Shown: one piece after another, positions 4,949 through 63,797 of the stretch
Position numbering within the stretch: position 1 is the stretch's first letter
How the letters are laid out: each line of letters opens with the position of its first letter
NCBI RefSeq assembly: GCF_000150275.1
Contig: NW_002060944.1
Span: 6,051,102-6,115,101 of the forward strand
Origin: Trichoplax adhaerens
Taxonomy: Eukaryota; Animalia; Placozoa
Length of the DNA: 64,000 nt
Direction: 5' to 3'
Notes under the pieces: generated by a model
Databases searched by the model: none
What the model was told of the DNA's origin: nothing
What the model saw: the letters and a program-made list of their open reading frames with translations, nothing else
Made by a program: the position numbers and the translations under genes

Positions 4949-7676
4949 TTACGGCCTCGTTAAAATTTCGACGCCTTGTGAAGTGATAAGAACCGTATGT
5001 TCGCATTGTGCACTTCTGAAATAAAAATGTAATCGATCAGAGGAAAAATTTCGGACTTGTGACTTGTATATTACATCTAATTCAAGATTTCTTTTCAGCG
5101 CGTAGTAATACTGTATAAATCCTTATGAATGCAAGATTAATGAAATGCGAACATGTACATAAATCATCCTTTTAGCGGAAGTCGTTTAAAATCAACAATA
5201 CCTTTTATTGTCTGTTGATATTGCAGTCCATCCGTCTTCAAGAATTTCTGCGTCAGGTGTTCCTTCACAAATGACCGGCTCTAGTATGACCATCAACGCA
5301 ACTTGTTAAATAGCACATAAATACATTGATGGTATCAAATGTAAAGAGTAGTCTACTATTTTTTGGAAACCTATTGTAAAGGTCATTCCAGGTCGCATAT
5401 GTCCCATTTGCCAATTACCTACGAACAGAGTGAATGGAAAAAAAGTAATTTAAGTAAAAAGTTAGATTTATCATAGTAACTGCTAATTACGTTAGATTTA
5501 ATTACAAATTAGTAAAACGTACGATAATGATAGATATGAGGGGGTCCATGAAAATATGATCCAATTCCATGGCCAAGAAACATTTTATTCACAGTAAAGC
5601 CGGCCGCACGCGCCAAGTTGCTGATAAAAGTTTTACCGTAAAAACAACATTTATACATTTATAGAACGGACATTAATAACATGCAATCTGACCTAATCGT
5701 TTTGCCAATATTGCGGAAGGGTACATTCGGCCCACAAATATCAATTGCTTGTTGAAGGCAAAGTTTGGCAGTTTCAACGAGTTGTTGGCCTGTTTCATCT
5801 ACGTTGCCTAATAAAAATGTATCAGAGGTATCGCCGTGATAACCATTATAATAGACCTATGTGATTAAAAGGAACAATAAAAGTTATTCAACTATTAGAA
5901 TTTATTAATACTAGAGTAAGTTGCTATTGTAAAAATTTGATATTATACTACTAGCAGAAAGCAGTCAGGAGTTATAGAAATTGATGTTATGATCGTGACT
6001 TACAGAAATATCAACGTTGATGATGTCTCCATCTTCCAGTGGACGGCTAAATGAGCGAAAAGAGGATTACATACAATGAATAAGCAATATTGAAATGGAT
6101 ATAGTTTTATAGATGTAATTTTATAATTTTTCTTATCTATAAACGTATCGTATGTACGAAGGATATTTTATGAGGCTACACTGTCTACCGTTAGTAACTT
6201 TTATAGATATTTGAATAGTTGGTAGAGTTTAACAGCAATACAATATCAAATGTTTGATCGAATATGATCATCTGTATTAACCTAACCTATCGGGAATTCC
6301 ATGACAAGCAACGTTGTTGACTGAAGTGCATACTGATTTTGGGTAACCATTGTAGTTGAGAGGTGATGGATAAGCACCATGTTGGATTATGTTATCGTGA
6401 ACGAACTGATCAATATCTTCGGTTGTCATCCCAACCTAAAATTGTAGTGTAAAGATCGAAATCAGGCAATATTTATTGTTTACGTTTTTGTACATAGTAC
6501 AGTATACTCGTTGTTGTATACAGTATTTATCGCATCATCAATTAATAAACAGAATTAATGGCAAGGTGGATAACGTTGTATTATACTTTACATCTCAATT
6601 AGCGTCGGACTTAATGCATATGCGTACGAATGTTTTATTTTGATAATTTACGTTTCTTAGGTAGATATTCAAATCGCAGTGAAGTTGGTGTTGGCAATAA
6701 TTAATCATTGTAATGCCATATTTACAGTCTATGTCGATATACAGTAAACGTGAATATTCATTATATGCGCGTGCATGGATTATCAAGGGCTGAAATTTTC
6801 TATGAGCTAATATTGATGCTCTAAACTAAAATTATATTGCCATGTCGTTTTTCAGTGTACCTTAATGTAGTTTTTAACAGAATCTAAAATTCGGTATGCC
6901 AATTGACAAGATCTCTTCATGGCGTCAATCTGGTCTTCATTTTTAATTTCAATAGTGATAGGTGACGGAGGGACTACGCCTGTTAAAGCGTATGGAGGCA
7001 ACGGTATACCTTGTGGGACAGGCTGAGCTGGAGATACTTGTTTAGGTTGTACCAAACTAAATGAAGACCAAGATCTATACGAATACAAGGAATAGACGTG
7101 GTTGTATTTTGTCACTAATTATAATTATAATTATAATTGAATGGTTACATAGCAGTGCTTTAAGTTAAGAGCTAGTTGTACCTAAAAATCTGCCTATATC
7201 GGCTGGAGAATAGCATAGATGGCGAATAGTAATTGCCTATTCGTAGCTTTCCTAAAAAAATCAATAGTTTCAATTGCATTTCTTGAACTGTTTGCATACG
7301 TACGTATCTCTGTCTAGCTCTGGACAACTGGCTGCGTTGTACAGTCGATAGCGTATTCTGCATCATTCAATTCAATTAATGATACTTGATAATACGAATA
7401 ATCTGCACTTATGCCTATGCTAGTTTAGTTATGTGCATAGTATTATGGTTAATTATTGGTTATGGTTGTGTTTTACAGGTCCGAAATCTGATCCACTAGA
7501 TTGCATCAGGTTGCATTTATCCTTGTATTGACAATCGTTATTACGCGTATGGGTCATATCGGTTATTTGCACGAGCAATGATCAACTTGCTGTTGCATTG
7601 ATCTGCTCTGTCTCTAACCTGCCATTTTAAGCATACGGCAACAAGTTGTCAGCCTATTGATTCCTTGTAAAACCAT
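4949..7676 (-). CDS. METAP1D: Mitochondrial methionine aminopeptidase 1D, multi-exon
   Basis: Exons give a basic presequence ([25 protein letters not shown]...RYRQIFR), [68 protein letters not shown] and [11 protein letters not shown]. All five metal ligands are present. The start at 7676 is inferred from phase-compatible splicing. Confidence 0.93.
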
Positions 7677-8003
7677 TCTACCGCATCCAAATTTACGACA
7701 GTATCTAGTATGTGTCAATAGGGTAGTCGATGTAGATCAAATAGCTGGCGAAATTGGATGCTAACATTAAATTGCAAGTTGAAACGATCAGGATGAGTTC
7801 CAACGAGCTGCAAGAGGTCCAGCTAACGACACTTTGAGCTAGCGTCAGTCAGCAAGTGTCGCAGGTCAAAATGAGAAGGCGGACTGTTCTTTTGCTATTT
7901 TGTTGGGTTATTTGACTGTCTCGGAAGACTGGAACCGTACACCATACTATGATCAACTTCGATACCGATGTACAGAAGTACAGACTAGGCAAGTGGTCAT
8001 CCT

Positions 8004-8700
8004 ACAGTACATATTTTCGACGAGGGTTATACAGTACAGTACAGTACTGTACAGTATAAGGGTTCATTGACTATCCCTAGCACCTACAGTACAGTACAGT
8101 ATAAGGGTTCATTGAATACTGTATCCCTAGCACCTACAGTACCGTGTACAATATTGTACTGTAGTTATTACGGCAAGATTTTTGGTACAGTGTACTGTAC
8201 AGTTTACAGTACAGCGATGTGCATTGAATTAGATCCCTTCCATTTTCTCTATAGTTCAAGCTGTTCAAAAGGAAATTTCTTATATGCAGTACTGTTGAGA
8301 AAATTGAAGGGATCTAATTCAATGCACACCACTGTACACTAAAAAAATCTGAAGTACAGTACTGTACTTCGGATTTTTTTATTTTACTGTCCTTCAGATA
8401 AGATTTAAGATTGAGAAGTCGGCCAGAAGTACAGTACAGTACTGTACTGTACAATACTTGATGGTCTAGTACAGACGTCAGGACCACTAGACAGGATCGA
8501 TTCAGTACTGTAGCGTCCTTACGTACAGTTTCGTAGATGATAGACAGACAGACTCTCTCATTGTACATTTATAGGGTACACACCAGTACCAGAAAAAGAA
8601 GAGGGACAGCAGCAAGACGGACATGATGATAGCTCCGGCTGTACAGTGTACAGTGTACAGTACCGTCGTGGACAGTACAGTGGACAGTACTGTAAAAGTC
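8004..8700. repeat. Dense cluster of TACAGTA/TACTGTA (ACAGT pentamer) units, including a ~45-bp tandem duplication (8051-8142) and a 42-bp near-perfect palindrome (8340-8381)
   Basis: Read directly, e.g. tacagtacagtacagtactgtacagta at ~8030-8056, and taaaaaaatctgaagtacagt|actgtacttcggattttttta with one T:G mismatch. Confidence 0.85.
8212..8334. mobile_element. 123-bp MITE with Tc1/mariner-type terminal inverted repeats and TA target-site duplication
   Basis: Left TIR CAGCGATGTGCATTGAATTAGATCCCTTCCATTTTCTC versus reverse complement of the right TIR CAGTGGTGTGCATTGAATTAGATCCCTTCAATTTTCTC (35/38 identical). TA at 8210-8211 and 8335-8336. Confidence 0.8.
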
Positions 8701-8741
8701 ACGGGTTGCTGGTAGAGTTCCTCGAAAGCTTGTTGTGATCG

Positions 8742-8813
8742 TCACATGATGTTTGCGTCATTTTAACATCACATGCTGCGCCTGTTGAAGTGTTGATGAA
8801 CGTCATCATGTGA
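8742..8813 (+). promoter_or_regulatory. Cluster of three CATGTG E-boxes (two full M-boxes, TCATGTGA) upstream of V-ATPase subunit a; putative MiT/TFE sites
   Basis: TCACATGA 8742-8749, TCACATGC 8769-8776 and TCATGTGA 8806-8813, about 380-450 bp upstream of ATG 9190. Confidence 0.6.
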
Positions 8814-9189
8814 ACAGATTCCATACGGAAAACCCACTCTCCAACCTGGTCTATAGTAACAGTATGGGCGACACCAGAATCGGTGTTGTTCATCAGCCAA
8901 GTTAATCAGTGAATTTAATGAAGCCGTCATGGCCACTCCATTGTACTGTACTGTACTATCGACTGAACCGTACCGTACCGTACCGGTCTAAAGTACAGTA
9001 CAAGACAGCAATAAATTATTATTCTGTTACTTCACTCAGACCATCCAGATATTTTTTTAATTTTCACTGGCGGTGCACCAAGCTTTTGCATTGCCTCTTA
9101 GCACAAATTAACCAGTTTTTCCTCACATTGGAGATTATTCTTTTGATGACATACCCATTACTTTAAGGGAAAGACTTGGATTCATCAAG

Positions 9190-12100
9190 ATGGTTTCGTT
9201 ATTTCGTTCGGAAGAGATGACGCTCGCTCAGCTCTTTTTACAGTCCGATTCTGCTTATGCTTGTGTTCGAGAATTGGGAGAATTGGTAAGAATTTTTTTG
9301 TTGGCCACTGCTGTTCAAAAGACAATCTAGTAGTCTCATAGTTGAGAGAGATATTCTACAATGTTGTAATGACCATCAGTTTGCCTACTTTCCAATCCAT
9401 ATTTCAACATGGATTCCTATTGCTGCTATCCGATATGTCAGAGTAGAGAGTACAATTGGGTCGTACAATACAGGACAGCGGCAAAAGTGCACATCCACTT
9501 CCAAACAAATTTCTCATTGAAAACTTGACTTTACTCGATATATATACAGTAGACACCACTCATGTCAATCCTACCGCTTTCTTGATTTTCCCTTTTTAGT
9601 CTTGATTTCTTTTTTTTCGTTTGCAATACTTTCAGTTCTATTGAAAATGATCGATAGCAATAGTCAGTCAATGGCGGTTGGCCTGCTAACTATCTTGTCG
9701 ATAATTAATAATATACAGTACTGTATATATATATATATGTATACTGTACAATGTACATGGGATCGCCATTTCCATAACAACTTATGCAAAGGATGAAGTC
9801 ATGGTGCAAGTTCTGTAGGCTCTACTTCTCGCGACAAGTACTGTATACTTAAAGGTTAATAAAGTAAATCAATCAGTAGTATGACAATGTCTTAACGAGT
9901 AGTAACTTGACTTGCTGGAGAACAACTCCGAAACGAACAGGCCAAAAAATCATGTACTTTTACAGAATACAATATCGGATGGCGACAACATCGCTAATCC
10001 TGCACAAGTAGTTTTTTACTCTCATCAACAGTAAAATGTATCGGTCTTGGGCGCAAAAATAGATTCATAACTACACTACAAAGTGGCTAATCTATCATAC
10101 CTTGTAGCGAGGCTATACTAAAGTATCGACATTTCTGTCTTTAAACAACCAAAGATTACTGTAAATTGTTAACTAATTTTGACCAGCTTTATTAATCAAG
10201 TGCTACTAATTAGCATACTAATAATGGGCTTTTTCTTAACCATTCTTTTAGGGCAAGGTGCTATTTCGTGATGTAAGTTGATTAACTAGCGTTAATTATT
10301 ATTCTTAAATACTCAGCAGATGAACTGTGTTCATTGAAACGTCAATTTATAAAAAATATGTTTTTACAACTGGATTTAATAATCCAAAGTGAAATAAATT
10401 AACTCATACGATGATAACATTGTGCTTTTTTTGATCTTACACAGCTGAATCCTGATGTTAATGCTTTTCAAAGAAAATTTGTCTCGGAAGTAAGACGATG
10501 TGATGAGCTGGAACGAAAACTTCGTAAGTAGCGCTTATGTTACATCGTCATAGTTTAGAAGAAACAGTGTCTAGTTTCACTGTACAGTATTGTTTAAAAT
10601 GCATACACTACGCTCTGTACCTGTTGTACTAATAGAATCCTGTAGAAGAAGCAAGTACTTGAAGAGAAATTTCCCATTTGTTATTACCTAGAACTATGTA
10701 TGCCCTTGATTATTATTTTAATTTCATGTCCAACAATTACGATTGTCAAAGGTTTTCTTAAAGCTGAAATGGAAAAGGAATCCATTCCCATTAAAACGGT
10801 GGAGACTGACTACACTGCTCCATTGCCAAGAGAAATGATCGATTTAGAGGTCAACAAATGGTCTTTTAGTAACCGACAAAAATTTATGCAACAAATACTT
10901 TGATCGATATGATAGATAGTATTAACCGATAGATTATAATTATAAGTACAGTACATTGTAATCCTGTACAACCTTAGAATCGTGATAAAAATACAGTACT
11001 ATAATTTAACGAATACACGTTATCGCTGTACATTGTGTACAATAGATATGTTATCCAAATTCTTAAAGCTTTAAAGATGATAATATTGATTATTACATAA
11101 ATATGTATAAACATTTTAGGCTAGATTGGATCATTTTGAGACTGATATTAGGGAAATCAATAAGCATCAGATGGCTTTGAAAAAAAATCTACTTGATTTG
11201 ATCGAGTTTAGAGCTATTTTGTCAAAAGCAAGCCATTTCTTCATCGAGGTAAATTAACGCAAGACTTTATTTTTACAAATTTTTAGTTTATGGTAGATTT
11301 TTAACAATACAATAAGATCAGTTTCGACCAATGGAATTGCTCCTATAAAAAAAGTTGTCGCTTTTATCTGAAAGCAATCATGAATTATTGATGGATATCA
11401 TCCATTATTTGATAATATTTTTCTATACCATAGGCAGAAGATGCTGTATTTCATCAAGCACAAGAAGTAGTACCCGATGAAGGAAGCAAATCTCTTTTAA
11501 TTGAAGATGGAATGCCAGAAAAATCGATTCAGTCATCACGACCAATGAGGTTAGAAATCGCATTATAGCGATTCATTCTGTAGAATTTTCTATCGTCCAA
11601 TACTAATTATACAATTGTTGTTCTTCAACAAATTTCATAGCTTCTTATCTGGTGTAATTAACCGAGATCATCTCGCCGCGTTTGAACGAGTTATTTGGCG
11701 GACTTCTCGTGGTAACGCTTTCTTTCGCCATGTAGAAATCGAGACACCGTTAGAAGATCCCAAAACGGTTATTATAATTATTGCATATACAGTATTGAAA
11801 AAGTATTGAAGTAATTAAAGTACTTAGCTAGTAATGGTATACTGTACAGTACGTACGAGTATAAATATATATATATATATATATATACAGTATATTGACA
11901 TATATATATATACTTCAAGTCATGAGATATTCTTATAACCTCTAAACAATAAAATTCAGGGTGATATGATTAGCAAGTGTGCTTTCATGATATTTCTACA
12001 AGGCAATCACTTAAGATCACGTATGATGAAAATCTGTGAAGGGTATGTACCATTTTGTTTGGTTCATTTTAGTCCCTACGTCACTTGTGGCACTAATAAA

Positions 12101-15100
12101 AGTAACTTGTATTAAGATACAGAGCTAGCGATACATGATATGCTTGCTATAACCTAATAGTCTAAACACATTACGTTGAAAGATTTTCCGCAACGGTTTA
12201 TCCGTGTTCTGATAATGCTGAGGTAAGACGCGATGCCTACGCGCAAGTAGAAACTAGAATACAAGATCTAAAATCGGTAAGAAAACGACGTTGAAAACAA
12301 AATTTACAGATTTATTAGATAGAACTTTATTACGAAGGACGTGTTGTTTATTCTCCTATTTAGGTTATAAATGAGACGGAGGATCATCGCTATCGCGTCT
12401 TAAATGGAACGTCAAATGATCTTGTCATGTGGATGATTCAGGTATTAGATATTCATCTTGATGCAATCACGAAATTCGTTATCCTAACAAGGTATATACC
12501 TTTACAATCGAATCAGACGAAAAAGATGAAAGCAATTTACCACACCTTAAATATGTTCAACGTTGATATTACCCAAAAATGTTTAATTGCTGAGTGTTGG
12601 TGCCCTGTACAAGAACTGGATAATATTCAGTGTGCGTTGAAACGCGGAACTGTAAGTATAAGTAAACGTGACCAACAAGATAAAAATTGTTGGCTTCACC
12701 TGAAATTAACAACGCCAATTTTTTTCATTGGTATTAACGACTAATGTACTACTGTCTTACCTCCAGGACTTGAGTGGATCGTCAGTACCTTCAATATTAA
12801 ATCGTATGATAACGAAACTTGAACCCCCTACGTATTACCAATTAAATAAGTTCACATCTGCTTTCCAAAATATTGTTGATGCTTACGGTGTAGCAACCTA
12901 TAGAGAAGCTAATCCAGGTAACAACTGAAGCTAAAGTGTTTTATGTACCCCTTTGATAAATATCTTGAAAATGTAGACATAAACTTTTTGATATGAGAAA
13001 CTAACTAGATAGTTTTATTTTAGCTTTATTTACCGTCATTACATTTCCATTCCTATTTGCGGTGATGTTTGGCGATTCTGGCCACGGATTGTTAATGTTT
13101 TTATTCGGATTATGGTTGGTACTCAACGAAAAGAAATTCACTCGGCAAAAGAATATGGGAGAGGTGCTATATTTGAACTAGAGGCAATTTAGATAGATAT
13201 TTTTCTTTCTTATCTGACATGCTGCCACCTTGTGCGACAGATTTTTAATACCATCTTTGGTGGAAGATACGTTGTACTGTTGATGGGTATATTTGCAGTC
13301 TATACCGGACTTATATACAATGACTGTTTCTCGCTTTCGTTCAATATTTTTGGTACCAGTTGGACTTTTCCAAATATTAGGTAATAGTATTTATAATTTT
13401 TATGTTAACTGTTGCATTTCTACTTATATTAACTTGTTTTATATCTACCAATATTAATTTTATTCTTTAAATCATTCCAATGCAGTGAGGGTTTTCTCCA
13501 TGATCATCCTACTTATCAACTGGATCCGAATGTTTCGTTTCCTGGTGGTCCTTATGTATTTGGAATAGATCCAGTAGGTTTTAGTTGGTGCATTATTCGT
13601 AGCCAGCTAAATTATCTTATGTGTAACATATATGGTAATATTTTCCTTTTCCCCAGATTTGGCAGACTGCAATCAATAAGCTTACATTCTTAAATTCTTA
13701 TAAAATGAAGTTATCAGTCATATTTGGTGTATTCCAGATGCTTTTTGGTGTGATTTTAAGTCTTTATAACAGCTTGTAAGAAAGAATTTATATTTCCTAT
13801 TAAAATAGTATTTGCAAATCTACTTATTGTACTAGCATCAATGTAACTATTGATAAACTACGTTGCAGGTATTTCAAGAAATATAGCAACATATTTTGTG
13901 AATTTATTCCTCAAGTATGTAAATTTTGATCATATTATTTCGTAAACATCGCCTTGTTCGTGCAATTGATACGTTATCATTGGTTTATTGGACTAGGTAT
14001 TATTTTTGAATGCTCTTTTCGGATATCTTGTTGCACTAATTTTTTATAAATGGATAGTTGTTGACGTACGAACAGAACCGGTAAGTTTCTATCTTCAGAT
14101 CCATCGCCAGTAGAATTAACTAATTTTCCACATTTATTCAATAATTTTATGCTACATATGTTTCAACATTAAATCTGATTTATGTATTATAAAATATGTA
14201 GTCAATTATTAAATCTTAAATTGATATACCGTATTTTGTTGCAACTCTAATAGCAACCTAGGTTATTGATTCTGATGATCAACATGTTTATAAAATTCGC
14301 GCAAAAGCTTCAACCCAGTGAGATTTTATATCATGGACAGGTATAGCAGTATAGTATGTTATAAGCTAAAGGAAAAGCAGTATTTATTAGCTCACAGAAA
14401 AGACTAATGAATTATTTCTATTCTTGATAGGAAACTGTTAATTTAGTTTTAGTTGTGGTAGCAGTTCTTTGTGTACCGTGGATGCTTCTCATAAAGCCAT
14501 TTTATTTAAGATGGAAACATAAGAGAAAATTGCGTAGCTACAGGCCGGTATGTTGTTGACTTTGTGATGTATTCAATTTACCTTGTAATGATGGTTCTTT
14601 AACTTCCTCTCTTCATATATGTGAGTTTAGATAACAATTGTATGTAACAGATACAGAAATGGGATTGAAACTAACATGCCATAATGATTATATTTCAGAA
14701 AACGAGGAAAGGCGGTAATGTTTACGTACAACTATCTGATGACGATGGCATGAATGATGAGTATACCACTTATCACAATGATGAAAGTCAACTATCTGAG
14801 AATTCATATGACGAAGAGGAAGAGGTATTAAACAGAAATTTTTGTACACTTATGTTGTTATCATCAAGATAACTAAGAGAGCACTGCCCAAATGATTCAA
14901 ATTAATAATTATTTTTAGTTTGACTTTGGCAACATTATGGTCCTACAAGCAATTCATACAATCGAATTTTGCTTGGGATGTATCTCTAACACGGCGTCGT
15001 ACCTACGATTGTGGGCATTGAGTTTAGCACATGCAGGTAACTTAACCTACGTAGCTCTTTTAGCACAATACTTTTCTATCGTGACGTACGTAAATTGCTT

Positions 15101-18934: not shown

Positions 18935-21900
18935 GGTTACAGCTCGCTGTTCGTTCTTCTTTTTTCTCCCTTGTTAATTAATTTCGATCGTTATCTAATT
19001 AATGGCTACAGGTCGATCACTCTAGCCTAGTAATAATCGCCAAGCTGAAGCGAGATAAAATAAGGAGAGAGAATCAATTGCACTTCACACCCTTCAAGTT
19101 AAATTTGGCAATAGCACTGTGCGCACTTTCCAGTCTAATAGCTTCAAAATAAATAACAACAACGCCGTTAGGGGTTCAATTTAAGGCAATTCTTGCTCAA
19201 GCCAACACGATTTTGCGTTTAACCGTGTGGTCTAAAAGGTCTCTAGTCGACAGTATCTGTCCGGTAATGGTGTTGTTACCACAGTACTGTACCCATACGG
19301 TAGTATCACCCCCGGTTGACAGGATGCCATAGGATGGTTCTCGGTGATACTCGAATCCTTATTTGGGACGCTGTGTACAGTACCGGGTAAAAAACATTAC
19401 GTCATGATGATCCGATTGGCTACTCAAAACGATTACTGACAACATTGTTTATATTAGGAAAGGAACTATTGACCAGCAGTAGAAGACGAATTAATAATGG
19501 TTTGACAACAAGAGAAATGGCCAGACATGGAAGATTCTCGTATTACTTTTGATAATAGAATTCCTTTCCTGTTTATTGATAGTCTAAAAGCAGTATAATA
19601 TGGAGAGGGATATGCATTTGACGGATTTGCAGGTATCAATCACTGGAATAAAACCCTCTCCAGTAAAAGATACTCGTTCGATGCTCAGTCTTGAGGATAA
19701 CATTACTTTTCCTATTTGATACCCATACTACTCATTTTATAAATAAATAAGCGATCCCGGTATGCCACAGAGATTGATTAGTAATTGGTTAACGCCAATA
19801 ACATGTTTAGCTTAAATCATCATCCTACAGCTATTTTTAGGATCATCAATTCTGATAACAAGTCCCTTTAAATCACTTCGTAGTGAATATGGATAAATTT
19901 AGATATGACGTTGCTATCGTACAGTAGTATGCTCGTCTTAGCTTTACGATTGTAGAAGAAAAGCTCTGTTGTACTGTACATGACAAAGGTAGAAGAAAGC
20001 TTGATTTCATGCAGAAAAGGTTTTGCACGATTGACAGGTATACAGTAATTAGAGCGATATTAGAGAGAAATGGACTCATGATAGATAGCCTGTGAACACT
20101 TACTCGTATACTTTATAAAGTAGATATTGGTATTGTACCCTTTCACGGTGCTGTCTGATTATTTCATTACTCTATACAGTATATACCTTACTTGGACCGT
20201 GATATATATATATACAGTATACCATACTGTTTTGGAAGGGACTAATCCCTGGACTGGTAGATATGGGCATTGAATATTGACATCATATTCAATTTTTTAA
20301 TTTTCGATTATGAGCAGTTTTTATAACGGCTACTATCATTATAGAGCTCGTTATCAATCATTTTTCCAAACTGAATCACACTACTGTTTCAAATTCAAAT
20401 ATTAATTTGCGTTATCAGTGTATAAAGCAATCATCGATCTTGTCAAACAGTCTACATGGACTACTGGACATATCGGTGCATATAAAAGTCCATGACTACA
20501 CAGTATCAGTAATCACAAGTCAGTGCAGCTAAATAATCAAAACGTAGTGTTTTTTTTATTATTACAACCCAAATTTTCGACGCTAAATAGGTAGCTAAGT
20601 TAATTATTTCTAAACGCTGGGCTATCAAGGATAGGCTAAAAGTTTCAAACCGTAGGAATGAGTAAAGTAATTATAAGTCTAGACAATTTTGATCAGGGTT
20701 GTTATTTTAAAAGGTAAAGGGCCTAGGGAAAATAGCAAGATTCCGCGATGGGGTAGGGGAAAAAATCTTTCCTCTTGAAGGATATCTCTAATACGATTGG
20801 TATTTAGCGTGTATTCATTGTAAGTGGTCGAGAAACATAACCAATGTCGTAGTATGTGGATTAAAACGGTTCGAAATTGTCACTAAGAATCGTGCAAAAT
20901 TTCGTTATTATGGGCGTTACTCCTTGTTAACTGGACTTAAGTTAAAGTAGTAGTCAGTATCAGTACAGTATTCAAACAGATATCCAATGCTCTCTGTCAT
21001 ACTATATACTCCATGCAGTCAAGGACTACTAGAAAAAAAAGGAATCCTTTTTCTAGTCTGCCAAATCAATATCATAGATCATATCACGTCACGATTTAAG
21101 AAATTATAAATAATTCCCTATAAATAAAGATCTCTGCTTCATAACTAGTACATTAAATTACGACCAGCACAATATTGTCAGCGTAGGGTCATTTGTGGTC
21201 AGGCAACGACAGCTTGACCCATAGAGATCGAAGAAAATCATGTTCTTCTCTATAATCTATAAGTCAAGCTGTTCCATGGGCCTACTCGATGTAATTTCTA
21301 GTTCATCGTAGTCCATGGCTGTTTACCATCATCATGGCGCACAGTGAGTACCAGGGATATTTTAACACGAAAAATGATGTCATAGTTTTAATTAATTGAT
21401 TCATCTAATACTATTACAGTAGTATCGCATTCAACGTTTGAAGACGGCGGACAGATGAAGGACGCATGTAGACGATTGTACAATACAACTGGACCACAGA
21501 AATCGACTACAGTACAGCAGTAAGTTAGTTTCTACTAAAGGAATCGACTTTTCATTGACAAAAATGCCAGGCCAATCTTTTTACTGTTCATTTTACTATA
21601 ACTGAAGACTAGAACCGTACAACCTACTGTAGCTAACCCACTTGGAGGCTACTTTTTCATTTATGATATTGAAAAATCGTTTCCTATCCCCCTCTCTCTT
21701 CTAATCGTGTCGAAGTTGCTGACCTTATCAAGCTGAGTGGCCGAGTGTACAGTGTACAGTCCACGATACTGTACACATTCTCATACTGTACACTGTACAG
21801 TACACCAATGTCAAATCGCCAAAACAGGACACTCACTACTAGACTAACTCCTGTTCTTGTACGCAAGCACAAGCCTCAAAACCTCATTACAAGTAAACGT

Positions 21901-22002: not shown

Positions 22003-25000
22003 ATGGCTGCTGCTAATTTATTAGCTACACTGACTGCTCCATCGGAGATCAACAGTCTAAGTTTCTCACCCGTACGTAACTTATTAGCTATTGCTTATGG
22101 GAATAAAACAGTTGGCATTTACGATGTCAATGGCAAGGAGATCGGAGAAAATCCCATCTCTCCCTTAATTGGCCATACCTATGCGGTCAATACATGTTGT
22201 TTTTCATCCTTTGGTACCATGTTAGCGTCGGGCGCTACAGATTATGCCGTCTGTTTATGGGATATTAAATCGGGTGGTAATATCGCTTCATTTGAAAATC
22301 ATACCAATGCCATACGTAAAGTGGTCTTTTCACCCAATTCCTCCTTGTTAGCATCAGCATCAGGCGATCAAACCATCAAAGTTTGGGAAATGTCACGAAG
22401 AAAATTACTACGATCATTACAAGGCCATGATACAACCGTTAATACGTGTTGTTTTACACCGGATAGTAATTATATTGTATCAGGTGCATTTGATGGCCAT
22501 ATTAAATTATGGCAAGCCTCCTCTGGCCGTTGTTTACAGACTGAGTTTGATTGCCACGATTTAGGCGTTAATGATTGCCAGTTCTCTCCTACTTTTGGAT
22601 CAGCATCTGAAGGTAACTTAGACACCAATAACCTGGAACAACAGGATCAACTCGGTACAGCATAAAATTAGCTATAGTTTAGTCGCTATCTACACATACA
22701 CTTCAATTCCAGTTGCTATCATAACACGACCATTTTTGTCGATACAGACAACATCCGATAGCAGTAGAAATCCTAAAAACATGTACAGTGCGGCGGTACA
22801 ATAATTGCCCAATCATTAATTTATATTGATTAACGGATCGACCAACTTGATACGCCCATATTACTCTAAATTGATTATACTACTTTATACCCGTTTATTA
22901 ATGGCATAATCTTCTTTTTAGTACAGTACAACAAAGTACTACAGTACCGGAAAAAAATGACACAACGTTGTTGTTCGTCCTAACCCTAAATACGAAGCAT
23001 AGTAATTGTGTGATGGCCATCGTCAATGAATTCATTCTCATATAAATGAAAGTTGGCAAATATGCCTACGATAGACGAATAGATTGCTCGATGATCCATC
23101 AATCAATCAAATACAATACAGTATACTACTCACTGTGTACTACGGCATATCCAAGTAGATTACATATATAGAAATTCGACTTAAAGAGCAGCTAGAAAGT
23201 GTAGTAAAATTTCTATTCATCAACGATACATTAAATCCTACGTACTCTAAACTATCTTATATTATATTCCATTTTAAGAGCCATAATACGTAATCAATAT
23301 ACTCTTGACAAACAATTGCGTTATATTATTGATGGATTCGTGTTTGTTTTGATTTAATGATGGAATAGCAGCCAGTATTACAAGATCAATCTCTTTAATA
23401 GTAACTTGAAGTTGTCTACCATTCTTATTCATTAAATAAAAACAGCATTATATATGTCCTGATTACCCCTATACAGCTCCACAGATATATTGTACATCTG
23501 GCAATAAAATATAATTAAATGCACTGTATTATTGATCAAAACATGTGATATAAGTACTATTGTAAGAGAATGTACAGTAGTATTGTATATATATTATTAC
23601 GCCATCAATATGACATGTTCGTATTATGTATACTGTATATCAATGATAGAATGGTTATACCAAGACTGCTATATATACGCATTTCATTTTCTTGGTTAAA
23701 AGATTAACTTGCTACAATATTGCTTACAATATTTAAAAGACTGCAAGAAAAATTGTTAGGTACAAAATCTTACCTGTATTCGGATATTTTCTCCTATATT
23801 TCTATTAGCTTATCAAGAAAACCTCAAGACAATAAATGGAACCATTCACTATCTTCTAGCGACTTGCGGTTCTGACATGTTTGTAAAACTATGGGATGTT
23901 TATATAGACCGGCAAGGTAACTGATGTTATTGTAATAATATTAAAGTTATGTTGTATGACTTCACCAATTCAAGATTATATAATCGCTACGATTTTACTG
24001 CCTAGAATTTTGGCAACATTAACTTTCTATAGCCGATATGTACTTTAGAATGTTACATATCTTACAAGAAAGGAATGATACCCTATCTCAAAATAAATAA
24101 TAACAAACTATCATTTTATTTACGTCCTATGTTCTTACAGCTGATACTTATAATATCACTAAAAGGGGCGACTTATCCGGTCATCAGGTATGATATCTGA
24201 TTTGATACTTAGGAATAAACTAAAAATTGAATCAGCTTTGTTTATGTTTTTTAATATAGTGTCAGAATTAGTTTCTCTAGGATATATTGATATATCTGTT
24301 ATAGTTTAAGATAATTAATTAAAGATTTTCTTAGATTGCTTTTAAAAAGTTTTCTGTTATGTATACATTATGGATACAAGTATAATAAATTTTTAACAAT
24401 TATTCTAACTTTATTTGAAATCTTAGCTTCATGTAACGATTTTATAAATTTTTCTACATCATCACTTAGTCAACAGTCTGGTGCGCCATATTTTCTCCAA
24501 ATGGTAAATTATTGGCATCAGGGTTAGTATTTTCATAAAACTGTATATTGGCAACTTGGACAAAAATCTTGGTATAATTTTATATTAAAGTAGTAAACAA
24601 TATTAATTGATACAGAACCTTCTAATGCAATTTTTTTACTATAGATCCGGAGATAGATCGGTCATTATTTGGAATCCGGTAAGAAAATCATCCATGATTA
24701 GCGACTATATGTAAATGGCTAATTTACAATTTGTGGATATTTCCGATTAAATTTCAAATGTTTACAGTATTGCTATTTTTATCAAGAAAGTAGTAGTTAA
24801 TCCATCTATCAACTTTTATTGCTACGCTTATGTTTTTCCTTCCATCTACATTAACATAATTATAAAATGTATTGTCAGAGGAGTATGATATGTCATTCTG
24901 TACTGTATAACCACCTAACTAATCAAAGTCTCGTAAACTGATATAACTTTAGCTCCATGGTGAAGCTCTACAGAAATTAACCGCACATACTAGGTAAAGA

Positions 25001-61716: not shown

Positions 61717-63797
61717 ATGGAGTTTCAACAACGAACTGTTATGCCTTATAGAGATAATGAAAGGCGCACTGTTAAAGTTAAATTTTATAAAAATGGGGAT
61801 CAATACTTTCAAGGACTACCAATGAATATTTCAATCAATCGATATCGTAGTATGGAGGCATTACTCAATGAATTAACACGCTCTATTTCCTTACCTCGCG
61901 GTGTTCGCTATGTGATGACGCCCGATAATGGCAAGAAAATACAAAGCGTCCATGAATTACAAGACGGCAAAGCTTACATCTGTTCCAGTTTCAATTCGTT
62001 AAGTAAAATAGAATATGGTAAAGCTGCTCGACCTGCCTGGCGTCCAAATACTAAACTAGCACCATTAGGTGCAAAACCAGTTGNNNNNNNNNNNNNNNNN
62101 NNNNNNNNNNNNNNNNNNNNNNNNNNNNNNNNNNNNNNNNNNNNNNNNNNNNNNNNNNNNNNNNNNNNNNNNNNNNNNNNNNNNNNNNNNNNNNNNNNNN
62201 NNNNNNNNNNNNNNNNNNNNNNNNNNNNNNNNNNNNNNNNNNNNNNNNNNNNNNNNNNNNNNNNNNNNNNNNNNNNNNNNNNNNNNNNNNNNNNNNNNNN
62301 NNNNNNNNNNNNNNNNNNNNNNNNNNNNNNNTATATACAACAAATGGCAAGGCGCTACGCGAGTTGTCGGAAATGTTGGGATCAGATAAGATTTTCATTG
62401 CTGTTGGATCAGAAGGTTTAAAAATGTCTGATCTTGAAGAAATTATGGAAGAAGTTCGTAATTTGCCTGGAAATAATGGCTCTATTTCTCATGGTGCATC
62501 TAGTTTTGGTAATAAAAAACCAATTTTAAAACCAATAGGCCAGGAAAAAAACAATCCTCAATCTCATCAACCTGTAAAAACCGATGATTCAACTAAAAGA
62601 GCCTCAAGAAATCGAGTAGCAGATACCGCTGACATATCAAGAGTTTCCAATGCCAACGATTTAACTAAATCCTCAAATAACAAATTAGCTGATACTACAC
62701 AGAAATCAAGAGCTTCAAGTGATACACTTTCTGAAAAAATGCCATTAACAAATCAAAATATTGAGAAGGATACTTATGAAAACGAAAAGGATATTGATGA
62801 AAGTGAGAAGAATGAAGATCAAGTTGACAAACAAGCATCAAACGACGATATCTTTAGTCCCGTCAAGGATACGGTTACAGATGGCGATGTTGATACACAC
62901 TCTGAAAAAATGCCATTAACAAATCAAAATATTGAGAAGGATATTGATGAAAACGAAAAGGATTTTAACGAAAGCGAAAAGGATATTGATGAAAGTGAGA
63001 AGAATGAAGATAGAGTTGACAAGCAAGCATCAAACGACGATATCTTTAGTCATGTCAAGGATACGGTTACAGATGGTGATGTTTTCGATGCTACTGCAGA
63101 TATAGAAAAGGAGGAAGAAAGCAAATCGAACAAAGATAATCTAGATCGATCTTCTATCCATGGCGAAGATAATCACGAGCGATCCTCTGTCCACAACGAA
63201 GATAATGGAATAAATTTAAATCAAGAAAAAGCGGGCGATAACGAGGAAAAGGAAGACACAAACAACGTTAAAGATCCTGCTACGCCTGTAAAACTGGGGG
63301 ATACGTTTATAAATAAAGTCAATAATGAAAATATTAATAAATCTGCTGGTAGAAATACCCCTGAAAATAATGAACCTTTACCTAATCGAGAGGGAACTTA
63401 TGAAGATTATTATGTCAAAGGGAATATAATTGGGGATGGTAATTTTGCTGAAGTGTTTCACTGCGTTGAGCAAGATACATTGGTAGAATATGCCTTGAAA
63501 TTAGTCCATAAAAGCAAAATCAAAGGCAAGGAAAGCATGATCCAAGATGAGATTAACATCATGAAAAAATGTCGTCATAAAAATATTATACGATTGATTG
63601 AAGTATTCGACACTCAGATAGAGATCCAATTAGTTATGGAACTAGTAAAAGGTGGTGATTTATTCGATCTTATCTCCGATGTTTCAAAATTTACCGAATT
63701 TGAAGCTAGTGGATTAATTGGAGATTTGGCGGCTGCTCTGCAGTACCTCCATAAACGAAGCATTATTCATCGCGATCTAAAACCAGAAAATTTATTA
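61717..63797 (+). CDS. DCLK3: Doublecortin-like Ser/Thr kinase (two DCX domains, acidic linker, CaMK-type kinase), DCLK3-like. Interrupted by an assembly gap and 3'-incomplete.
   Basis: DCX1: VKFYKNGDQYFQG...RYRSMEALLNELTRSISLPRGVRYVMTPDNG. After the gap, the DCX2 tail YTTNGKALRELSEMLGSDKIFIAVGSE. Kinase: IIGDGNFAEV...YALKLVHKSKIKGKE...GGDLFD...IHRDLKPENLL, then donor GTAAG at 63798. Family is secure; paralogue is less so. Confidence 0.85.
62084..62331. other. Assembly gap (run of N) within the DCLK gene
   Basis: Run of n characters in the sequence. Confidence 0.99.
62721..63083 (+). repeat. In-frame coding tandem duplication (171 bp + 192 bp) in the DCLK linker, with 21-bp EKDxxE(N/S) sub-repeats
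   Basis: DT(L/H)SEKMPLTNQNIEKD...VDKQASNDDIFS(P/H)VKDTVTDGDV occurs twice, near-identical at DNA level. Confidence 0.92.

Follow-up and report, generated by a model that had tools for sequence, protein, structure and literature searches.

By what process does the ACAGT repeat of Trichoplax arise? No other short repeat is as abundant in the genome. It marks housekeeping promoters, and it has been unexplained since 2010, when ACAGT was reported to make up 78% of pentanucleotide repeats, with 54% of its occurrences in the 1 kb preceding a gene (Wang et al. 2010, PMC2871265). This published gene-associated excess is the one that a first-pass annotation of the present locus had referred to when it proposed that the units are accumulated excision footprints of Tc1/mariner-type elements. 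Transposable elements were put at 0.13% of the Trichoplax genome, with none active (PMC2871265).

We examined a window of 64,000 nucleotides from T. adhaerens (H1), whose positions are used below and which contains an assembly gap of 248 N at 62084-62331. One protein of 701 aa encoded here falls into the same 90%-identity cluster as a near-identical protein annotated in Trichoplax sp. H2, in agreement with the assignment to T. adhaerens. Counts refer to this window, to a 264-kb sample made up of the window and 200 kb from another scaffold, or to the whole assembly of 105.6 Mb in 1,414 contigs. From these data we conclude with high confidence that the ACAGT repeat consists of discrete, TA-anchored and randomly oriented 5-bp insertions produced by a process other than slippage.

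Form, orientation and TA anchoring of the units

The CAG, CTG, CCG and CGG forms differ solely in the centre base of TACNGTA, and W and S are used here for units with A/T and C/G at the centre, respectively. TACAGTA was found 61 times and TACTGTA 55 times in the 64-kb window, with approximately 7 expected for each, and TACCGTA and TACGGTA were also present (n = 16 and n = 8). Unit density was approximately 2 per kb, which, extrapolated from the 264 kb, corresponds to approximately 200,000 units per genome. It was noted that most arrays in this sample were single units (449 of 511), and that C or G centres accounted for 13% of units.

The published reading treats the repeat as an ordinary (ACAGT)n microsatellite acting as a promoter element, with slippage making the units, point mutation changing their centres, and selection for a transcription-factor or chromatin function maintaining them. 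Its promoter association and GO enrichment (PMC2871265) agree with this reading, as does the identification of repeating ACGG and ACAGT as Trichoplax motifs predicting Hi-C features (preprint 10.1101/2024.11.14.623548). The arrangement of the units themselves is difficult to reconcile with it. As had been described from the sequence by eye, TA-separated CAG and CTG units occur in mixed orientation, for example at 8030-8056, where the centres read A, A, A, T, A. Genome-wide, two-unit words occurred 6,323 to 18,630 times, compared to 8 to 21 times for the same words reversed. Adjacent pairs comprised 18,630 of the AA and TT types, 7,220 AT and 6,323 TA, giving 18,630 pairs of the same orientation against 13,543 opposite (57.9% same, 42% opposite). 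Pure runs made up 1,214 of the 4,976 four-unit windows (24%), which is twice the random expectation and a point for slippage, whereas 76% were mixed. Across the 264 kb, A and T centres were nearly equal (284:243), and genome-wide their order was nearly random, as the footprint proposal had predicted for CAG and CTG.

We then considered point mutation as the source of this mixing, and rejected it. A/T transversions comprised only 41 of the 333 SNPs between H1 and its close relative H2, and transitions would have given C or G centres, which are far rarer than flipped ones; point mutation therefore cannot mix the arrays. Pure slippage was likewise rejected by the orientation test and by the indel test described below.

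The S-centred units followed a different pattern. Three-unit S-centred windows were rare genome-wide (n = 52), and 41 of the 50 windows listed were pure (82%). The CCG/CGG arrays thus behave as slippage would have them behave, which favours the microsatellite reading for this minority. The first-pass annotation had counted TACCGTA and TACGGTA among the footprint variants; their presence was borne out, and their status as independent footprints was rejected on the rarity and purity of these arrays. The 7-base variants it had listed, TACAGTGTA and TACACTGTA, were both recovered, with 15 of each in 264 kb and each enriched 6-fold. Such equal numbers are, by our own inference, what a 5-nt stagger on CAGTG ends would yield.

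The strongest regularity was the tie to TA. Among maximal periodic runs of exactly 7 bases, we found 185 of TACWGTA, compared to 6 of ACWGTAC and 7 of GTACWGT, and the flank pair TA_CWG_TA occurred 527 times in 264 kb, with every other flank pair around CWG occurring at most 90 times. Array starts and ends were locked to TA, or to GTA/TAC, and the arbitrary-phase boundaries expected of slippage were not encountered; this phase-locking, together with the predominance of single units, counts against the microsatellite reading. Unit flanks showed a symmetric TG-TA-CA preference, which may reflect a target preference or decayed neighbouring units.

Units also arise at a distance from one another. 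We counted 224 units with no other unit within 100 bp, compared to 42 +/- 7 for 13 control words matched in composition, and the ratio was still 4-5 under stricter isolation. Because isolated units are approximately five times as frequent as control words, seeding needs no local template. Array sizes were compared with a simulation in which the units of 26 hot zones were collapsed and the same number re-inserted at random TA sites, with each scar adding one TA target. The observed distribution of 103/27/15/3/2/1 was close to the simulated 126/30/9/2.5/0.8/0.3; the hot zones were defined by the units themselves, which makes the agreement a test of consistency and not a proof. The small excess of long arrays and the 58% of same-orientation pairs correspond to approximately 16% of adjacencies having come from copying.

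A separate word was noted in the 264 kb (the window and L032-L051). The palindrome TACGCGTA occurred 21 times, compared to 2.8 expected, and was the most enriched 8-mer outside the ACWGT family; ACGCGTAT was enriched too. TACGCGTA may represent a further promoter word or a further TA-bounded unit.

Unit gains at a divergent promoter

The densest units of the window lie between two divergently transcribed genes, whose positions were taken from H2 gene calls mapped onto the window. The features of this promoter and of the other unit-bearing regions are as follows, unstranded unless a strand is given.

About 7366 (minus strand) and 9190: flanks of the divergent promoter, namely the start of a Peptidase_M24 gene and the ATG of the V-ATPase subunit a gene
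8003-8694: TACWGTA cluster of 23 W-centred units in the divergent promoter
8030-8056: five-unit array; H2 has two units here and one at a neighbouring TA
8040-8142, plus strand: 45-bp repeat in two copies, the remnant of a tandem duplication of about 525 bp that is kept whole in H2
8117-8123: isolated TA that carries a TACTGTA unit in H1, but in neither the H2 orthologue nor the paralogous copy of the 45-bp repeat
8212-8334, plus strand: Tc1/mariner-type MITE of 123 bp with ends CAGCG... and ...CACTG, flanked by TA at 8210-8211 and 8335-8336
8337-8356, plus strand: 20-bp TA-bounded insert adjoining the right-hand TA of the MITE, an inverted copy of the downstream arm
8428-8457: array with centres A, A, T, T and then a decayed unit; the H2 sequence differs by 12 bp (a 5-bp unit and a 7-bp unit)
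8640-8661: array of the 7-bp variant (TA+CAGTG)
8942-9000: small second cluster, with a pure ACCGT run at 8967-8985 and a centre-base flip between H1 and H2 at 8949
10947-10953: intronic unit; H2 has an additional unit of opposite orientation at its left-hand TA
19283-21805: sparser units (n = 14, 4.6 per kb) in the divergent promoter of a SKICH-domain gene and a WD40 gene, with an H1-specific unit at 21508
23485-23495: TA without a unit in H1 and TACTGTA in H2, gained at 23487, with no TA-microhomology template nearby

Unit density was 14.3 per kb in the first divergent promoter (7366-9190) and 4.6 per kb in the second. It was approximately 2 per kb in introns, 0-1.5 in 3' intergenic DNA and 0.16 in long coding ORFs, with approximately 0.27 per kb expected by chance; units were depleted 14-fold in the long coding ORFs. 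The clustering near gene starts and the rarity in coding DNA that had been claimed for the motif are thus evident in these densities, and the other clusters named by the annotation were present.

H1 was aligned over 46.3 kb with Trichoplax sp. H2 (GCA_003344405.1), using the orthologue of the window (L052) and a second locus (L053); the two genomes diverge at 0.65-0.78% of sites. An excess of 5-bp indels had been predicted for such an alignment, and 8 of the 19 indels of 3-30 bp took the form TA+(CWGTA)n, with n from one to three. Only two of the eight are compatible with tandem duplication, and with one centre flip they are the events that the microsatellite reading accommodates; the other six uphold the earlier statement that slippage alone explains the arrays poorly, and neither the arrays nor these indels show head-to-tail identical units as the rule. 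All eight unit indels lay in the first locus and none in the second (24.7 kb), and so the process is focal.

Several gains could be polarised. At 8117 a bare TA is found both in H2 and in the paralogous 45-bp copy, which makes the unit there a 5-bp gain in H1 that involved no tandem duplication. At 8353, with the second H2 copy as outgroup, it was H2 that gained a unit, opposite in orientation to its neighbour. The net step was 5 bp at 8117, 8353, 10945 and 23487; the gains within a MITE copy amounted to +10 and +20 bp. Gains away from identical units had also been predicted, and they were found at 8117 in H1, at 23487 and 10945 in H2, and at TA sites within the MITE copy. Insertion of 5 bp at bare TA sites is a further point against the microsatellite reading.

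The insertions inside the MITE were recognised through the duplication that H2 retains. H2 carries 481 extra bp after 8084, comprising a second, diverged copy of the MITE region and approximately 200 bp of unique sequence. The two H2 copies differ by approximately 9 substitutions and 5 indels, and every indel is a multiple of five. Two of these differences fall at TA sites within the MITE, one of 10 bp with centres A, T and one of 20 bp with centres A, T, T, A, and since approximately 30 aligned arms of the MITE family lack them, they are insertions. Unit-like inserts were found at the same TA in three other MITE copies. The H2 tandem copy could be two alleles joined by the assembly; unit insertion inside the MITE is demonstrated either way.

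Unit number differed between H1 and H2 at at least six places within 700 bp. Such high polymorphism argues against tight positional constraint, and thereby against the selected promoter element of the microsatellite reading. Taking the orientation, boundary and indel evidence together with the points in its favour, we regard that reading as very improbable. Four public read sets were also inspected over 6400-12399, where the assembled contigs were broken at every array and all listed indels were of 1-2 bp; a contig of organism B covering 8064-8393, with 11 extra letters, was consistent with the H2 assembly indels. A 29-bp H1/H2 indel at 8811-8839, in the same promoter, is unrelated to the pentamer units.

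Two gains next to the MITE have the appearance of copying. The 20-bp insert at 8337-8356, absent from the second H2 copy, creates a 40-nt palindrome at 8341-8380, and an H2-specific gain of 15 bp (T, A, T) at the right-hand TA of the MITE repeats the pattern of a block 18 bp downstream. Both look like products of templated repair synthesis. They raise an alternative in which no transposon takes part: double-strand breaks in promoters would be repaired by microhomology-primed templated synthesis of a polymerase-theta-like kind, which would copy a nearby TA-bounded unit either directly or, by snap-back, inverted, so that units multiply locally and orientation becomes mixed. The gain at 8117 is the inverse of an array 13 bp upstream, as snap-back predicts, gains are focal and mostly close to existing units, and an active transposon was not found in the searches reported below. 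Self-copying of this kind would, however, account neither for the link of breaks and joins to TA (185 runs in that phase against 6-7 in the others) nor for the origin of a first unit, given that units isolated by 100-200 bp are 4-5 times as common as control words. The gain at 23487 had no template to draw on. Templated repair usually gives varied insert lengths, whereas exact multiples of 5 dominate here, and the simulated array sizes fit random choice of TA with no extra pull toward existing units. We therefore consider the repair alternative unlikely as the general source of the units, if less so than the microsatellite. Both of these copy-like events sit exactly at the position at which a transposase would cut the MITE end, which fits a hybrid of transposase breaks and templated copying but does not prove it.

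A distant placozoan provided a separate observation. On a Logan contig (SRR30664516, L054:30-60), a TA-TCG-TA run of three units in TA phase lies upstream of the SKICH-gene orthologue. In this small sample of 18.8 kb, TCG was the most enriched TA-N3-TA word and TACWGTA occurred at chance frequency; the contigs, largely coding sequence, have diverged too far for promoters to be compared.

CAG-ended MITEs and the search for a transposase

We sought elements of the kind that could leave such scars. The first-pass annotation had described a TA-flanked, CAGTG-ended MITE inside the cluster. The element and its flanking TA were confirmed, as was the right-hand CAGTG end; the left end reads CAGCG in H1 and CAGTG in H2. 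Its family comprises approximately 12 loci with 75-90% identity, in forms of approximately 130 bp and 300 bp, has a consensus end of TA followed by CAGTGGTGTGC, and is small and old. In a scan of the 264 kb, CAG was the commonest end among TA-flanked inverted repeats. A second family was represented by one element outside the window.

L039:8871-9047 (8869-9049 with TA): MITE of 177 bp ending in CAGTA, with terminal inverted repeats that match perfectly over 36 bp and a duplicated TA

This second MITE is inserted at a TA inside a unit array, and its perfect repeats suggest, as far as the sequence can tell, that it is young. MITE ends adjoined a unit in 8 of 17 cases, compared to 3.4% of TA sites bounding a unit (p = 3e-8). 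CAG-ended elements that duplicate TA, which the footprint proposal had predicted, therefore do reside within the arrays, in two families.

A satellite at L015:1130-1800 (G000:C1412:704876-705534) consists of monomers of approximately 75 bp derived from one MITE arm and carries 0-3 TGTAC units, all in one orientation, where the monomers join. The one-orientation units of this MITE-derived satellite are of the kind that the microsatellite reading would expect.

Domain searches of the genome with DDE_3 and PF01359 detected no active donor element or transposase. The mariner-type domain PF01359 had zero matches in the genome, and the single DDE_3 match was an intact, single-copy Tc1/IS630-like ORF of 358 aa with HTH_28 and DDE_3 domains (TRIADDRAFT_57505; L031:895-1971, G000:C1409:3537595-3538671). 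H2 encodes the identical protein, the two genes differing by two synonymous changes, and the protein has 565 relatives in the protein library. Alanine replaces the first catalytic Asp, where 15 aligned relatives have Asp (Gly or Lys in two), the DNAPCHS motif is lost, and CAG inverted repeats are lacking. The Tc1 transposase with CAGTG termini that the annotation had proposed to look for was thus not found in these searches, the lone DDE_3 ORF having neither the first catalytic Asp nor the repeats. As an active enzyme TRIADDRAFT_57505 was rejected, being single-copy, with the first catalytic Asp replaced and no solved relative by sequence. From its sequence it resembles a stationary transposase, probably inactive or domesticated.

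Three pogo-like DDE_1 matches were noted at G000:C1396:1272742-1273251, C1373:146174-146725 and C1411:7363514-7363975. Their open frames extend over 550, 419 and 426 aa without stops, and they are candidate enzymes for TA-specific elements.

The 46-kb H1-H2 alignment was also inspected for intermediate states. It contained no TA with an element in one allele and a scar in the other, and no transposon insertion polymorphism. The window MITE occupies one and the same site, fixed, in both genomes, and both lineages gained units after their split (0.65% divergence). The non-canonical scars expected of excision (TACGTA, TACTA, TAGTA and TACATA) were barely enriched, at 0.75- to 1.3-fold (TACGTA 1.3-fold, TACTA 1.25-fold, TACATA 0.75-fold), and the both-overhang scar TACAGCTGTA was found 0 times in 264 kb.

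Proposed excision scars and known systems

Excision by Tc1/mariner-type elements is the best available mechanism for the units: it alone would give the target, the length, the three bases and the A/T ambiguity together, and suitable elements lie in the arrays. We would nonetheless give it only about an even chance. Under this mechanism, each unit would be a separate event that converts TA to TA-CWG-TA and adds 5 bp. Its source would be the excision of an element with CAG...CTG ends, inserted at TA and cut with a 3-nt stagger; the CAG overhangs would pair with a central A:A mismatch, which repair would resolve at random to A or T. Such elements would favour open promoter DNA, each scar would supply a new TA target, and repeat visits to zones of a few hundred bp would build mixed arrays without slippage. 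Slippage or short templated copying would add a minority of approximately 16%, and the pure CCG/CGG runs would derive from mutated units. We infer that a transposase made the breaks, and that the units owe their distribution to promoter targeting and not to selection.

Measured against these results, the footprint hypothesis of the first-pass annotation holds for the TA anchoring, the 5-bp step, the orientation and the MITEs. It fails for the CCG/CGG units, and neither the active donor nor the paired element and scar alleles were found; approximately 16% of adjacencies are attributed to copying.

A more specific form of the excision mechanism is a tentative proposal that we think somewhat unlikely as a whole. 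Here a cut-and-paste system would have been active after the H1/H2 split, with short CAG-ended MITEs mobilised by transposase genes that stay in place and have no inverted repeats themselves, and it would have left of the order of 10^5 scars in placozoan promoters that now form the dominant 'microsatellite' and possibly a promoter or 3D-genome motif. If this were true, the repeat would be a fossil trace from which transposon hopping could be quantified, in an animal considered almost free of mobile DNA. If the units are excision scars at all, a genome deemed nearly free of active transposons preserves dense traces of cut-and-paste activity that is past and perhaps also current. It would also follow that 'microsatellites' can form without slippage, and that transposon targeting could have produced the promoter motifs now being linked to chromatin loops in placozoans, either as by-products or as products that were co-opted.

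The microsatellite of Wang et al. (2010) is the same feature in the same genome, with the same promoter association. That paper treats ACAGT as a tandem repeat and possible transcription-factor site, and the mixed orientation, TA anchoring, predominance of single units and insertion origin are absent from it. A literature search found no paper linking the ACAGT repeat to transposon excision.

In the available text of Kim et al. 2025 (PMC12221973), a loop-anchor motif of promoter hubs is tied to 'Mutator' inverted repeats annotated with EDTA. As described there, the motif resembles the units in being short, restricted to promoters, linked to the ends of DNA transposons and found at placozoan housekeeping-gene promoters. 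Those elements were classed by EDTA, an automatic structural pipeline, and the comparison with the present units is one of descriptions only. Inverted pentamer arrays or MITE ends might be what EDTA classed as 'Mutator'.

The MITEs resemble Stowaway-like and other Tc1/mariner MITEs, since the 123-bp and 177-bp elements both have a TA duplication, terminal inverted repeats and no coding capacity. They differ in their very low copy numbers, and the window family is diverged and carries unit insertions within its own arms.

The closest parallel is found in the footprints of Sleeping Beauty (SB) and other Tc1 elements. The canonical SB scars are TACAGTA and TACTGTA, which arise when the cut is staggered by 3 nt and the centre base is repaired ambiguously (bioRxiv 10.1101/659086). 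Known scars are sporadic and single and lie beside active elements, whereas the Trichoplax units are stacked in arrays concentrated at promoters, where the active element was not found. In other respects the two are alike: the sequence is identical, TA lies on both sides, 5 bp are added, the bases are those of CAG/CTG ends with A or T about equally frequent at the centre, and CAG-ended elements with TA duplications are present here in the same DNA.
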